Assembly: GCA_965112735.1 (NCBI GenBank)
Contig: OZ218956.1
Span: 2,914,001 to 2,978,000 of the forward strand
Direction: 5' to 3'
DNA from: Phaeosaccion multiseriatum
Lineage: Eukaryota; Protista; Ochrophyta, other classes
DNA: 64,000 nt
The notes under the pieces were generated by a model, which made no database searches, was not told the DNA's origin, and was given only the letters and a program-made list of their open reading frames with translations. The translations under genes were made by a program, and so were the position numbers. Below are positions 11,201 through 58,000 of the stretch, one piece after another; the stretch's first letter is position 1; every line of letters starts with the position of its first letter.

Positions 11201-14200
11201 CCCCCAGGTGATGAACAAGGTCCGAACGCAGTCCAAGCTGTTGCTGACGGGCACCCCCCTGCAGAACAACCTTCGCGAGCTCTGGGCCCTCCTCGCCTTC
11301 ATGATCCCCGACATGTTCAAGGTGTGTGGTGTGGTGTATCACCAACTGATGTGGTGTGGTGTCGTGTGGTGTGGTGTTGTGTGGTCTGCGGTGTTGTGTG
11401 GTGTGTTGGTGAGCCTTGGTGGGCTATACCTACCTACCTGTCTGTCTGTCTGTCTGTCCGTCTCTCTGTCTCTCCTGTATGTCCGTCTGTCTGCCTGCGT
11501 ACCCACCCACCGACCTACCTATGAACCTACCTGCGAACCTCTCGTCTCACCCCCATCTCATCCCTTCTCTCCTCTCCGCTCTTCCCCCCCCCCCCCCGCC
11601 TTAGGTGAGCGAGCCTTTCGACGACGCCTTCAACCTGTCCCAAACGGCCGAGGTGATGGTGAAGGATGATATTCTGCACAAGGCCCACTACGTGCTTAGG
11701 CCCTTCATGCTCAGGCGTCTCAAGAAGGAGGTCGAGTTCAGCCTGCCTGCGAAGGTTGGTCAGGGGGAGGGGAGGGGAGGGGAGGGGAGGGGAGTGGGGG
11801 AGGGGAGGGGAGGGGAGGGGAGGGAGGGTGTATTCATTGGGCTGAGGTGGTTGGATGTGTGCTTATTGGTTCGTAATCCCGCCGCAAACCGCTTCCTTCC
11901 TTCCTCCGTTTCGTCCTTCCTTCCCGCCCTTCCTTCCGGCCTTCCTTCCTCCCATCCATCCTTCCTTCTTCCTTCCTTCCGTCCTTCCTTCCTTCTTGCT
12001 CCCATCCTTGCTTCCATCCTTCCTTCCTTCCTTCCATCCTTCCTTCCTTCCTTCTTTCCGTCCTTCCTTCCTTCTTGCTCCCATCCTTCCTTCCTTCCTT
12101 CCTTCTTGCTCCCATCCTCCCATCCTTCTTTCCTTCCTTCCGTCCTTCCTTCCTTCTTGCTCCCATCCTTAAATCAATCCTTCCTTCCTTCCTTCCTTCC
12201 GTCCGTCCTTCCATCCTACCTTGCCAGGAGGTGATCGACGTTCGCGTGCCTCTGACCAAGGCCCAGGTGTTCTGGTACAAGCAGCTGTTGAGCAAGGACA
12301 GGGACTTGTTGGCCAAGGTGGACGGGGCAGGAGACCAAAGCTCGGGCAGCGGCGGGGCGGAGGCAGGAGGGGCAGAGGACCACCTTACCACGGCAGACGA
12401 GGAGGAGTCAAGAGCCGGCAACGGAGGCGCAGCAGGAGGAGGAGGAGGAGGAGGAGGAAAGAGGGGGCGCGGCAGGCCTCGGCTCACGGCCAAGGAGGAG
12501 GAGGAGGAGGGGGGGGAGAACGACGGGAGTATGAGTGGAGTGAACACGGGCAATGCAGCGGGGTCGGACTGGAAGCGGCTGCAGAGTCTGCTCACTCAGC
12601 TGCGCAAGTGCTGCAATCACCCGTTTCTGTTCCGAGGAGTAGACCCCACACCGGGGGAGACGCATGGTGAGAGTGCTCGGGTGGAGGCATATGGGGGGGG
12701 GGGGGGGGGTGGCTGGGATGGATCCGGAGAGTAGGGGGGCATACGCCCGTCCATATGGTCGTGTGGCGGTACTGCTGCTGCCGCTGCTACTGCCTCGCGC
12801 CCGCCTGCCCTTGTATCTTTGTCTCTCATCGGTTTCATCGATTTCCCTCCCTCCCTCCCTCTTTCGGGCGCCAAGCACACAAATCATTTCATAGCCTCAC
12901 ACCCTCACCCCCTGTTTTTATTACCCCTCCCCACCCCATCCCTCCCCTCCCCTCCTACACCGCAGAGAATGTGGTGACGTCAGCCGGCAAGCTCGCCCTG
13001 CTGGACCGCCTGCTGCCCAAGCTCAAGGAGAGGGGCCACCGAGTGGTGCTCTTCTCGCAGTTTACCTCCATGCTCGACATCCTCCAAGACTATTGCGCCA
13101 TGCGGGGCTATCACATTCGGCGGCTTGACGGCAGCACGGGTCGAGTGCATCGCGCCATCGCCATGGCAGGTGCGATGTCGTGTGGTGTATCACCAACTGG
13201 TGTGGTGTGTTGTGGTATGGTGTAGTGTGTGGCGTGGTGTGGTGTGGTGTGGTGGTGTGCTGTGGAGTGATGTAGTGTGGTGTGGTAGTTGTGGGGAGGG
13301 CATATGGGCAGGTTCAGTGGCAGCGGCGCCGAGCTCTCTCTCTCGCTCTCTCTATCTCTGCCTCTCTTCTTTCTCTCTTTTGAGAGGGTCTATCGCCCTC
13401 TCTTTCTCCCGCCCCCTTGCTTCCTTTCGGCTTTCCTTCTTTCAGTGTGTGAATGATTCTGAGGTGTGCCCTCCCACTTCTCCCTCCCCCTCCCCCCTCA
13501 GAGTACCAGAAGCCCAACAGCAAGTTCTTCATCTTCCTCATGACCACGCGTGCAGGGGGCCTTGGCATCACCCTCACCGCCGCTGACACAGTGGTGCTCT
13601 ACGACAGCGACTGGAACCCGCAGGTTGGCTCGTCACTTTGTCACTAGTTGCTCTGTCTCTCTTATCGCTTTATGGCACTGGACCAGAGTATGATTGTTGG
13701 TCTGTCTCTTTCATCTCTCTATCGCACTGAAACAGAGTATGGGGAAAGGGGAGGTGGGGAGGGGGCGGAGGGGACGGAGGGGACGGAGGGGAGGATCGGA
13801 GTAGGAAGAGGAACAAGAGAGGCATCTTTTGCGTGCCATACACTCAGAGGCCTCTCTCCTCTCTCGTGATGCCATACACTCAGAGGCCTCTCTCCTCTCT
13901 CGTGATGCCATACACTCAGAGGCCTCTCTCCTCTCTCGTGATGCGAGGGAGGGGGGCGCTTTTCTCATCCTTTCCTTCGGTGCTTTTCTTCGGTGCTTTT
14001 CTTCGGTGCTTTTCTTTGGTGCTGGCTTACCTAAATCCTCGCACTCAAACCCCTCTCTCTCGTGACCTTTTGTCCTCTCCACCACCCCACCCCACCACCC
14101 CCCCCCCCACCACCACCACCATCATCATCATCATCATCACCATCATCATCACCATCACCATCATCATCATCATCATCATCATCATCATCATCATCATCAT

Positions 14201-55000: not shown

Positions 55001-58000
55001 CTGCTCCGTTTCCTCCTCCCCCTCCCCCCCTCCTGCTTCCCCTCACCAAAACTCCCTGAAGGCCACCAGCTGGTACCGCAGGCATACAGCGAGGAAACGC
55101 CGCATGAGGGCTTGAATCACCACCGCCGCTTCAATCCTCATCCTGCAAGCTCACAAGAGCACACACAGCAGAGCAGCAGTGAAGTACGCATGTGAACAGA
55201 ACAGAGCAAGGACAAGTGAGCTCCGGGGAAAGCGCGCGAGCGAGCGACGCTATCGATACCAGCATCGGCAGGAGCCTTTTCGACGTGCCCCCTCGGGCCT
55301 TACCCCCCTCGGGCCTTACCACCCTCGGGCCTTACCCGCTGGGGCCTTACCTGGCGCACTCCGGGTCCTCAAGCTTCATCATGCGCCTCCTCTTGCCGGC
55401 ATGGTACATTCGGTACATCTTTTGGATGCGTACGGCCGCACTAAGAGGAGGGAGAGGGAGAGGGAGGGGGGGGAGGGAGGGGGGGGAGGAGGGGGGGGAG
55501 GGAGGGGAAAGGGAGACACCACAAGGCAGCGTCACTCACCCCGGAGACAAGTAAAAAAAAAGCATCGCCAGTCGCATGATCGTCACAAAGGTATCAGCAG
55601 CTGCAGCAGTTGGTGATACAGCAGAAGCCGCAGCGAGGGAGGTCCAAAGGGTCACTTACCCAGCTCCGAGCGCCTTCTTCTCTACCCTCCACTTGAGCTG
55701 TGCCATCTGCCTCTGGAAAAAGGCCTTGCTCAGAGGGTCCAGGGGGGCGGCTCGCCAGTAGCGCCTGGAGGAGAGAAGAGAGAGGGAGAGGGAGGGAGGG
55801 AGGGAGGGAGGGAGGGAGGGAGGGAGGGAGGGAGGGAGGGAGGGAGGGAGGGAGGGAGGGAGGGAGGGAGGGAGGGAGGGAGGGAGGGAGGGAGGGAGGG
55901 AGGGAGGGAGGGAGGGAGGGAGGGAGGGAGGGAGGGAGGGAGGGAGAGAGGGAGGGAGGGAGGGAGGAGGGAGGGAGGGAGGGAGGGAGGGAGGGAGGGA
56001 GGGAGGGAGGGAGGGAGGGAGGGAGGGAGGGAGGGAGGGAGGGAGGGAGGGAGGGAGGGAGGGAGGGAGGGAGGGAGGGAGGGAGGAAGGAAGGGAGGGA
56101 GGGAGGGAGGGAGGAAGGGAGGGAGGGAGGGAGGGAGGGAGGGGGGAAGGGAGGAAGGGAGGAAGGGAGGGAGACGAGAGAAGACAGAAACAGAGAGAAC
56201 AGAAGAGAGAGAGACAGAGACAGAAAGAAGAGAGAGAGGCGGCGAGGGTGGAGTGGAGTAGAGAGGCGTGTGGTGTGGGCGATATTCCGCTCAGTACATG
56301 AGACCCGTAACCGTATTCCGTAACCGTAATCCGTAAGCGTAATCCGCAGGCAGAGCCCCACTCTGACATGACTTGACACACCCACAGACACAGCACGCCT
56401 ATCTCTCCCTCCCTCAACCCCACCCACTCACCCTCCCCACCACCCACCCCGGCTCGCCGCCCCTCACCTCGCCCTCCTCAGCGGCGCTGGTGGGATCTGC
56501 TGAGGCCGACTGGGATGTGGAGGTTTGAGTGCCTCCTTCCTCCTCCTTCCGGCGCCTCGAATGAACCAGGGCAGGTCCCGAGTGCCGTAGCCTTCCTCCC
56601 GTGCCCATGCGCCCCTGTCCTCCCCCTTGCCGCTCCCCTTGGACAGCAACTTGCGTACCCCCTTGACATCGAAGGGCGACACAAAGACGAGAGGTTTCTT
56701 CCTCTGCACGGCAAGGCATTCGTTACAGAGGGCCATCTCGTTGCAGGTGGTCACAGGAACCGCTTCGTCCCCGTGGATCTGGTGGAGGGTTTTGAGCGGT
56801 ATAGCAGTTGGTGATACGGCAGCAGCAGCAGTAGGGGTGGTGATAGGAGGGAGCAGGGAGGGACGGGAAGTAGTACCGCTCGGGTCAATGCACCCAAACG
56901 TGCTCCATCACTAGAGCCTGAGAAGCCACAGATATTCAAGTTGAAGAAGCAGCAGTGGCAGCAATGCCAACAAGCAGCCGAGCCCGATCCTACCAAACCA
57001 AACAACAGAACCAGATGTGACCGAACACCACACGCACACGCACACACATACACACACACACACACACACACACACACACACACACACACACACACACACA
57101 CACGCATACACACAGAGTCTGACTGACCTTGGACACGCAGAAGTTGGCGTGCCAGCTGCAAGTGGTGAGCTGATCGCTCACCCATGCGCCGACCTCATCC
57201 TTGAACTTCCTCCAGGGGTGCGTGAATCTGAGCTGGGTGCAACCATGCTGGCGGCCCTCCTTGTCCACATCGCGCCAGCGGCACTTCTTCACCAAGCGCC
57301 CTCCGATCATCATCACTCTGACGACGGGGAGGGGGGGTGGGGGGGAGGGAGAAGAGAGGGGGTGAGGGGGGGGGGGGGGGCAAGAGCAGGGCAGAGCAGG
57401 GTATATAGGCAGAGCAGGGCATATAGGCAGAGCAGGGCATATAGGCAGAGCAGGGCATATAGGCAGAGCAGGGCAGACATTGCTATGGCGGAGCACAGCA
57501 GAGGGCAGGGCATTGTTACTGGAGGGCACGCCAGGCATACGGGTAGGCATGGATGACGAAGTATCCTCCTCCTCCTCCTCCTCCTCCTCCTCCTCCTCCT
57601 CCTCCTCCTCCTCCTCCTCCTCCTCCTCCTCCTCCTCCTCCTGCTCCTCCTCCTCCTCCTCCTCCTCCTCCACCTCCACCTCCACCTCCACCTCCACCTC
57701 CACCTCCACCTCCATCACCACCTCCTCCCCCTCCTCCTCCCCACCACCACCACCACCACCTCCTCCTCCTCCTCGGCCGAGCCAGCTAGCTACGGGATGA
57801 GAGGAGAACAGAAAGGGATGGGATGGGAGATGTATAGGTGGCAATCTGCGCGGCACTCACTGCGTCTTGTTGGCCTGCGTGCTCTGGAACATGGCAGCCA
57901 TCTCGGCATCCACTAGATCCGGCAGGTGTATGTCGAAGCGAACGGCATGATGGGGGGTGCGGGAAATGCGTACCTGCGCTCCGCCCGCATCATTCCATCA

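Follow-up and report, generated by a model that had tools for sequence, protein, structure and literature searches.

Elements that target microsatellites have been described in plants, namely Micron of rice and the MITEs (miniature inverted-repeat transposable elements) of pineapple and guayule (PMC8449440, PMC5907723). The sequence considered here is the 13-nucleotide (nt) word GTATCACCAACTG, referred to below as the motif, which recurs in a stretch of 64,000 nt from Phaeosaccion multiseriatum (contig OZ218956.1, positions 2,914,001 to 2,978,000 of the forward strand); this whole stretch is called the window. Like the motif, Micron and the MITEs prefer the interior of microsatellites, leave repeat on both sides and are present in many dispersed copies. 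However, they are longer than 100 bp and have inverted termini and defined target duplications, whereas the unit of the motif is 11 nt long and has no inverted ends. Exact words of 8 to 12 nt that occur in very many copies, in genes and spacers alike and irrespective of the reading frame, are represented by HIP1 in cyanobacteria, the DNA uptake sequences of Neisseria and Haemophilus, and the REP elements. These are prokaryotic, are spread by transformation bias or by RAYT transposases and are often palindromic, in contrast to the motif, which is eukaryotic, non-palindromic and confined to microsatellites.

Three further systems resemble the motif in single respects. The CAA and CAT interruptions of ataxin genes and the AGG interruptions of FMR1 likewise place non-repeat letters in frame within a trinucleotide tract, but they are locus-specific point variants of a single unit, while the motif is one sequence of 9 to 15 nt found across unrelated loci and in two repeat types. 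End joining by polymerase theta produces a short insert bounded by microhomology, in that a 3' end first primes synthesis along a template and afterwards anneals again; its inserts, however, come from nearby and vary in sequence, whereas the motif is fixed. Telomerase acting at internal breaks adds the same insert every time, from a template of about 11–15 nt.

A recurrent word within simple repeats

The exact 13-mer is present in eight copies in the window, with both strands used, and all eight coordinates and strands given in an earlier note, made from the letters of the window, are borne out. No match to it was found in 100 dinucleotide-preserving shuffles of the window, and in a census of all 11- to 16-mers it is the sole non-simple word that occurs at five or more separate places. 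Its invariant part is the 11-nt core GTATCACCAAC, of which the window holds nine copies, and across these 99 core positions there are 0 substitutions despite impure flanking repeats. When up to two mismatches to the 13-mer are allowed, the search adds one near-copy at 53176 and two matches at chance level; GTACCACCAACTC (34687-34699, minus strand) is a two-mismatch match in unique coding DNA, with 1.1 such matches expected by chance. The near-copy GTATCACCAACGG (53176-53188, minus strand) has a single mismatch to the 13-mer and an intact core. Situated 18 nt upstream of the copy at 53158, it has the appearance of a tandem duplicate (18 nt) of this neighbour, altered by one substitution. At about 48268 and 48294, both on the minus strand and spaced by 26 nt, the sequence reads GTATCACCACAAC, which differs from the core by an insertion of 2 nt. 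This pair (48268..48306) has 14 nt, CTGCTGTATCACCA, in common with the copies in CTG-type tracts; judged by these letters, the pair is probably, though not certainly, related to the motif. All three variants that the earlier note had mentioned are therefore present, two of them as 2-nt insertion forms and one as a one-mismatch form. The copies are listed below, with placements that rest on a rough exon and gene map of the window.

11336..11348, plus strand: exact copy in (GTGGT)n; intron of an SNF2-type helicase gene (plus strand), starting 14 nt past the donor; sense
13187..13199, plus strand: exact copy in (GTGGT)n; later intron of the same SNF2 gene as 11336, starting 17 nt past the donor; sense
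18843..18855, plus strand: exact copy after (CTG)5; 3' part of the SNF2/PHD gene region (plus strand); probably sense
27909..27921, minus strand: exact copy within a degenerate tract of the CTG type, 3' of a C2-domain gene (minus strand); probably sense
36202..36214, minus strand: exact copy between (CAG)4 and (CAG)5 of the plus strand; open frame of an RGS-domain gene (plus strand); antisense
48268..48306, minus strand: two diverged copies, GTATCACCACAAC; coding-like open frame on the minus strand
53158..53170, minus strand: exact copy in a CTG-type tract; intron of an IQ-motif gene (minus strand), starting 93 nt past a GTACGT donor; sense
53176..53188, minus strand: variant GTATCACCAACGG with intact core, adjoining the 53158 copy
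55607..55619, minus strand: exact copy with a short stretch of CTG type around it; intron of an IQ-motif gene (minus strand), starting 40 nt past a GTAAGT donor; sense
56805..56817, minus strand: exact copy at the 3' edge of (CTG)4; 26 nt upstream of the end of a likely acceptor (...ccaccag), beyond which lies a coding-like exon of the minus strand; probably sense

Of the eight exact copies, six belong to tracts of the CTG type and the other two to (GTGGT)n, so that the description of the motif as always lying in a microsatellite context holds. Four loci were assigned to introns, and a fifth, 56805, is probably intronic as well.

The earlier note had asked for the motif to be confirmed in reads, as a guard against an artefact. 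Contigs derived from public reads of two samples of the same species, from two studies, were compared over positions 53000-55780. Locus-specific contigs cross the 53176 and 55607 copies from unique sequence with no differing letters and at single-copy depth, and the 55607 copy is joined by read contigs to unique flanks on both sides. For three runs of one sample, the summed contig depth in the 93-nt bin that contains the 55607 motif amounts to 391x, 1154x and 964x the depth of adjacent single-copy sequence, and a run from the other sample and study shows the same pile-up. Dozens of loose contig ends meet at this motif with low agreement, that is, with many different flanks. Furthermore, all three sampled words of the 36202 site are present in the run of the second study and in those of the first sample, while none of them is found in the two listed runs of other organisms from the same study. 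The genome thus contains hundreds or more exact copies of the motif inside simple repeats. A library, adapter or assembly artefact might be suspected for a short exact string within repeats that are hard to assemble, particularly as both studies may have used one culture strain. However, the single-copy contigs that bridge the motif to unique flanks, its presence in a second sample of another study, and an insertion that is always in phase with the repeat and fixed in orientation (see below) make such an origin extremely unlikely, and we know of no adapter or linker sequence that matches the motif.

Anatomy of the insertion and its possible origins

The 4 nt on the 3' side of the core are TGCT in the CTG-type tracts and TGGT or TGAT in (GTGGT)n, and the 4 nt before the core equal the 4 nt after it perfectly in six of nine copies and at three of four positions in two more. 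If the core and these 4 nt, 15 nt in all, are deleted, an in-phase (CTG)n or (GTGGT)n is obtained at 8/8 loci. At 11336, where the end of the exon is followed by GTGTGT at the start of the intron, the deletion leaves a clean (GTGGT)n, and at 13187, where TGGT stands on either side of the core, the phase of the repeat is regained. The probability that the phase is kept at all loci by chance is about 5e-5. The number 15 can be divided by 3 as well as by 5; an insert of constantly 9 or 10 nt would put one of the two repeat types out of phase. In addition, the strand that carries the core is in every case the TG-rich one of its repeat (8/8 loci, p = 0.008). Each copy therefore looks like the same 15-nt insertion, consisting of the 11-nt core and a 4-nt flanking direct repeat. 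The copies at 27909, 55607 and 56805 adjoin only one or two pure repeat units, which implies that short homology is enough, and at 56805 the right flank is non-repetitive beyond TGCT.

When flanks of 400 nt were compared with each other and with the whole window, only the motif and the adjoining simple repeat proved to be common, the shared stretch including the motif being 13-14 nt between repeat types and 25-54 nt among the CTG-type loci. The motif is consequently not part of a longer repeat, and a body of tens to hundreds of bp common to the copies, as in a MITE or DNA transposon, was not encountered. No paralogous empty sites were found in the window. A census of interruptions in CTG tracts with at least two CTG units on either side yielded 29 interruptions, 18 of them distinct, among which TATCACCAA is the only complex one that recurs.

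This census bears on whether one chance interruption could have been copied among CTG/CAG tracts by neutral ectopic gene conversion or synthesis-dependent repair, without any machinery specific to the motif. Such a process would explain why the motif is always found in repeats, in phase and oriented according to the repeat strand, and the copies of the CTG type have 19-21 nt in common, flanks included. A generic copying of interruptions between CTG tracts was nevertheless rejected, since solely the motif interruption recurs. The core is also present in GTGGT tracts, which have no homology with CTG tracts, and to the right of the 56805 copy only 4 nt of repeat remain, so that we consider neutral conversion unlikely.

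The 4-nt direct repeat around the core could also be read as a target-site duplication. Accordingly, the copies would be minimal mobile insertions or uniform excision footprints left by a transposase or integrase whose staggered cut (4 nt) falls on TG[C/G]T, with a 4-bp duplication around 11 nt of element ends. The frequency of this direct repeat and a net gain fixed at 15 nt in two repeat types are in line with this, and microsatellite-targeting MITEs are known in plants (PMC8449440, PMC5907723). However, the core has no terminal inverted repeat, its ends GTATC and GTTGG (reverse complement) having only GT in common, and no longer element with these termini is present in the window, where GTATCACC and CACCAACTG occur only at the motif copies and variants. 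Moreover, 11 bp would be too short for two transposase-binding ends, excision footprints are normally heterogeneous, and a duplication inside a repeat is what the repeat itself predicts. An origin by transposition thus appears doubtful. Even less probable is that the copies are extremely 5'-truncated products of a microsatellite-specific non-LTR (long terminal repeat) retrotransposon whose RNA ends in ...GTATCACCAA(CTG)n. Site-specific LINEs that target microsatellites do exist, in the form of the R4/Dong type, but the 5' boundary is identical in 9/9 copies, with neither nested longer copies nor common upstream sequence.

With respect to polymerase theta, microhomology is present at both junctions, as TG[C/G]T on either side of the core. 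However, the inserts are neither locus-specific nor drawn from a template within tens of bp, because identical stretches of 11-13 nt are found at eight unlinked loci; only the two doublets, 53158/53176 and 48268/48294, could be local copies. These doublets show that short-range copying also occurs.

Among the options that the earlier note had offered, the footprint of an insertion or repair process targeting simple-sequence repeats fits best, given the in-phase gain of 15 nt, the invariant core flanked by a direct repeat of 4 nt and an orientation that depends on the strand of the repeat. We therefore favour, at a probability of roughly 0.4, a motif-specific copying process that is primed by microhomology during the repair of breaks in TG-rich repeats, a mechanism that we infer from the anatomy of the copies. 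A break or nick in a TG-rich repeat would leave a 3' end ...TG[C/G]T, which would pair, through the 4-nt microhomology, with a motif-bearing template from which about 11+4 nt would be copied. The new ...TGCT end would then re-anneal to the repeat across the break, and the gap would be sealed. The template could be a second copy in the genome, a transcript that includes a copy or an RNA dedicated to this role. The inserted tag would be tolerated in introns and in some low-complexity coding loops and probably purged from CAG runs coding for polyglutamine (polyQ), which would produce an apparent sense-strand bias. The process must be sequence-specific, given that in the window the CTG tracts contain no second complex interruption that recurs.

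Several points weigh against this copying process. The break repair, the template RNA and the enzyme are all putative, and the anatomy is based on nine copies, one of which, at 53176, is without the 4-nt direct repeat (2 of 4 nt match). Within a repeat, the direct repeat and the kept phase amount to one observation, which cannot separate copying by microhomology from a target-site duplication. Templated insertions by polymerase theta copy nearby sequence and not one sequence that is fixed throughout a genome, and the spread of one sequence and of no other is left unexplained by the mechanism. Finally, the 0/99 core substitutions could equally mean selection on a function. A more specific form of motif-specific copying is a system devoted to patching broken TG-rich microsatellites with a fixed 11-nt tag, added from a short template by a telomerase-like, RNA-templated or a nuclease-guided route and primed by the 4-nt microhomology. 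This would be a self-propagating eukaryotic micro-insertion without known counterpart, and we regard it as possible, though on present evidence rather improbable.

Gene context, strand bias and function

The earlier note had stated that seven of the eight copies read in the sense direction of their host gene. This is plausible but weak (one-sided p = 0.035); five orientations are firm, namely sense at 11336, 13187, 53158 and 55607 and antisense at 36202, while those of 56805, 18843 and 27909 are only probable. The rule that the core lies on the TG-rich repeat strand (8/8) is a stronger regularity than this bias for the gene sense (7/8). The antisense exception, the 36202 copy, lies within the reading frame of the RGS-domain gene (PF00615, E = 2e-7), in which it reads AAVGDTA. 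In the same gene region (35433-36713, plus strand), the RGS domain is interrupted in frame by a low-complexity stretch rich in K, E and A (about 130 residues), which bears the motif and may be either a coding loop or an unusual intron.

Pure CAG/CTG runs without the motif have CAG on the sense strand in eight of ten cases and mostly code for polyQ, whereas runs that bear the motif have CTG on the sense strand in five of six, three of these five being assigned to introns and two unassigned (Fisher p = 0.035 for the contrast). The sense bias fits tolerance in introns and loss from polyQ exons better than a function at the RNA level.

A functional cis element kept unchanged by selection, be it an RNA element of introns or a binding site on the DNA by which repeats are marked or stabilised, and spread by whatever route, would agree with the lack of substitutions in the core and with the finding that the four intronic copies and the probable fifth are all in sense. 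Interruptions are also known to stabilise CAG repeats. Any interruption would do so, however, and a function leaves the spread of identical copies to unrelated loci unexplained. As regards the RNA or splicing element suggested in the earlier note, the distances to splice sites are scattered (14, 17, 40 and 93 nt past donors and 26 nt before the likely acceptor), the 36202 copy is antisense and in an open frame, and DNA folding of six sites revealed no structure beyond that of shuffles (z -1.1 to +0.9). The Myb-type or other protein-binding site proposed in the same place is at odds with the exactness of the copies over 11-13 nt, with their sharp edges and with their location in introns and reading frames as opposed to promoters. 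A degenerate core near promoters, as would be typical of a Myb-type site, was not observed, with a single one-mismatch copy and with placements in introns and open frames, and any 13-mer holds some transcription-factor core. Neither the Myb-type nor the splicing reading is supported, and maintenance by selection on a function is given little weight here.

Occurrence elsewhere, genomic setting and significance

The repeat-embedded motif was not found in the JGI metagenomes, in IMG/VR or in 85 kb of four relatives. An exact 19-mer search of JGI metagenome contigs returned 20 loci and an exact 17-mer search of IMG/VR 34 loci, each with a single copy. Of these 54 matches, 53 lie in a unique, mostly low-GC context and the remaining one in a short CTG-like context; they are regarded as chance matches. 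The latter (L005:3721-3739) is the only metagenome match with a CTG-like left flank; its contig has 49% G+C, and this single copy is itself probably a chance match. Two further contigs (P0101 and P0037) proved to come from marine metagenomes and to be unrelated. The PiT loci of Ectocarpus sp. 6, Choristocarpus, Discosporangium and Heterosigma, which make up the 85 kb, contain no copy of the core. A full-text literature search with the motif, its reverse complement and five derived peptides gave unrelated primers or nothing, and the motif is not mentioned in the brown-alga genome papers examined. The earlier note had pointed to similar QQQLVIQQQ/AAAVGDTAAA strings in other protists; these found no match in the literature, and the repeat-embedded motif was not found in the metagenomes, viral contigs and relatives searched. 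We found no described repeat class that fits the motif, which is a real dispersed micro-element; this micro-insertion is genome-wide and, to judge from the four relatives sampled, lineage-specific.

The window has a G+C content of 58.8%, and perfect simple repeats of period 1-6 make up 11.7% of it, compared with 0.4-1% at the PiT loci of the four relatives; Tandem Repeats Finder reports 261 rows for it. The PiT phosphate-transporter gene at 37442-39157 (plus strand) shows 60-70% identity to brown-algal proteins and is equidistant from early- and late-branching brown algae, which indicates an ochrophyte near, but probably outside, the brown algae; a database entry for the PiT protein of the window itself was not found. 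This gene is open from ATG to stop through an apparent in-frame intron of about 40 codons, the brown-algal homologues having 505-534 residues. Other tandem repeats were also observed. The unit AGTGGATGGCAG / GGATGGCAGT forms tandem arrays at four places (43573, 47708, 52214 and 59444), so that identical non-trivial units have been seeded at several loci in the genome. A 12-mer array (GGTCTATCTGTC) with 35 units and 95% identity is located beside a 52/110-nt minisatellite embedded in (TC)n (16039-16463 and 16715-17446), and a perfect 36-nt unit is repeated 3.1 times with 100% identity at 13834-13944, inside the SNF2 gene region.

If the anatomy described here holds throughout the genome, the motif would be the shortest dispersed eukaryotic 'element' known to us and would document, in nature, how a genome mends breaks in unstable repeats. 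For annotation, the tag will confuse repeat maskers and gene predictors, and where it falls into coding sequence, it adds five residues to proteins (e.g. VGDTA; LVI inside polyQ). Because interruptions stabilise CAG/CTG tracts, the motif has a bearing on the biology of repeat expansion. It could reveal a sequence-specific templated repair activity and could help to explain how this genome tolerates its extreme microsatellite load.

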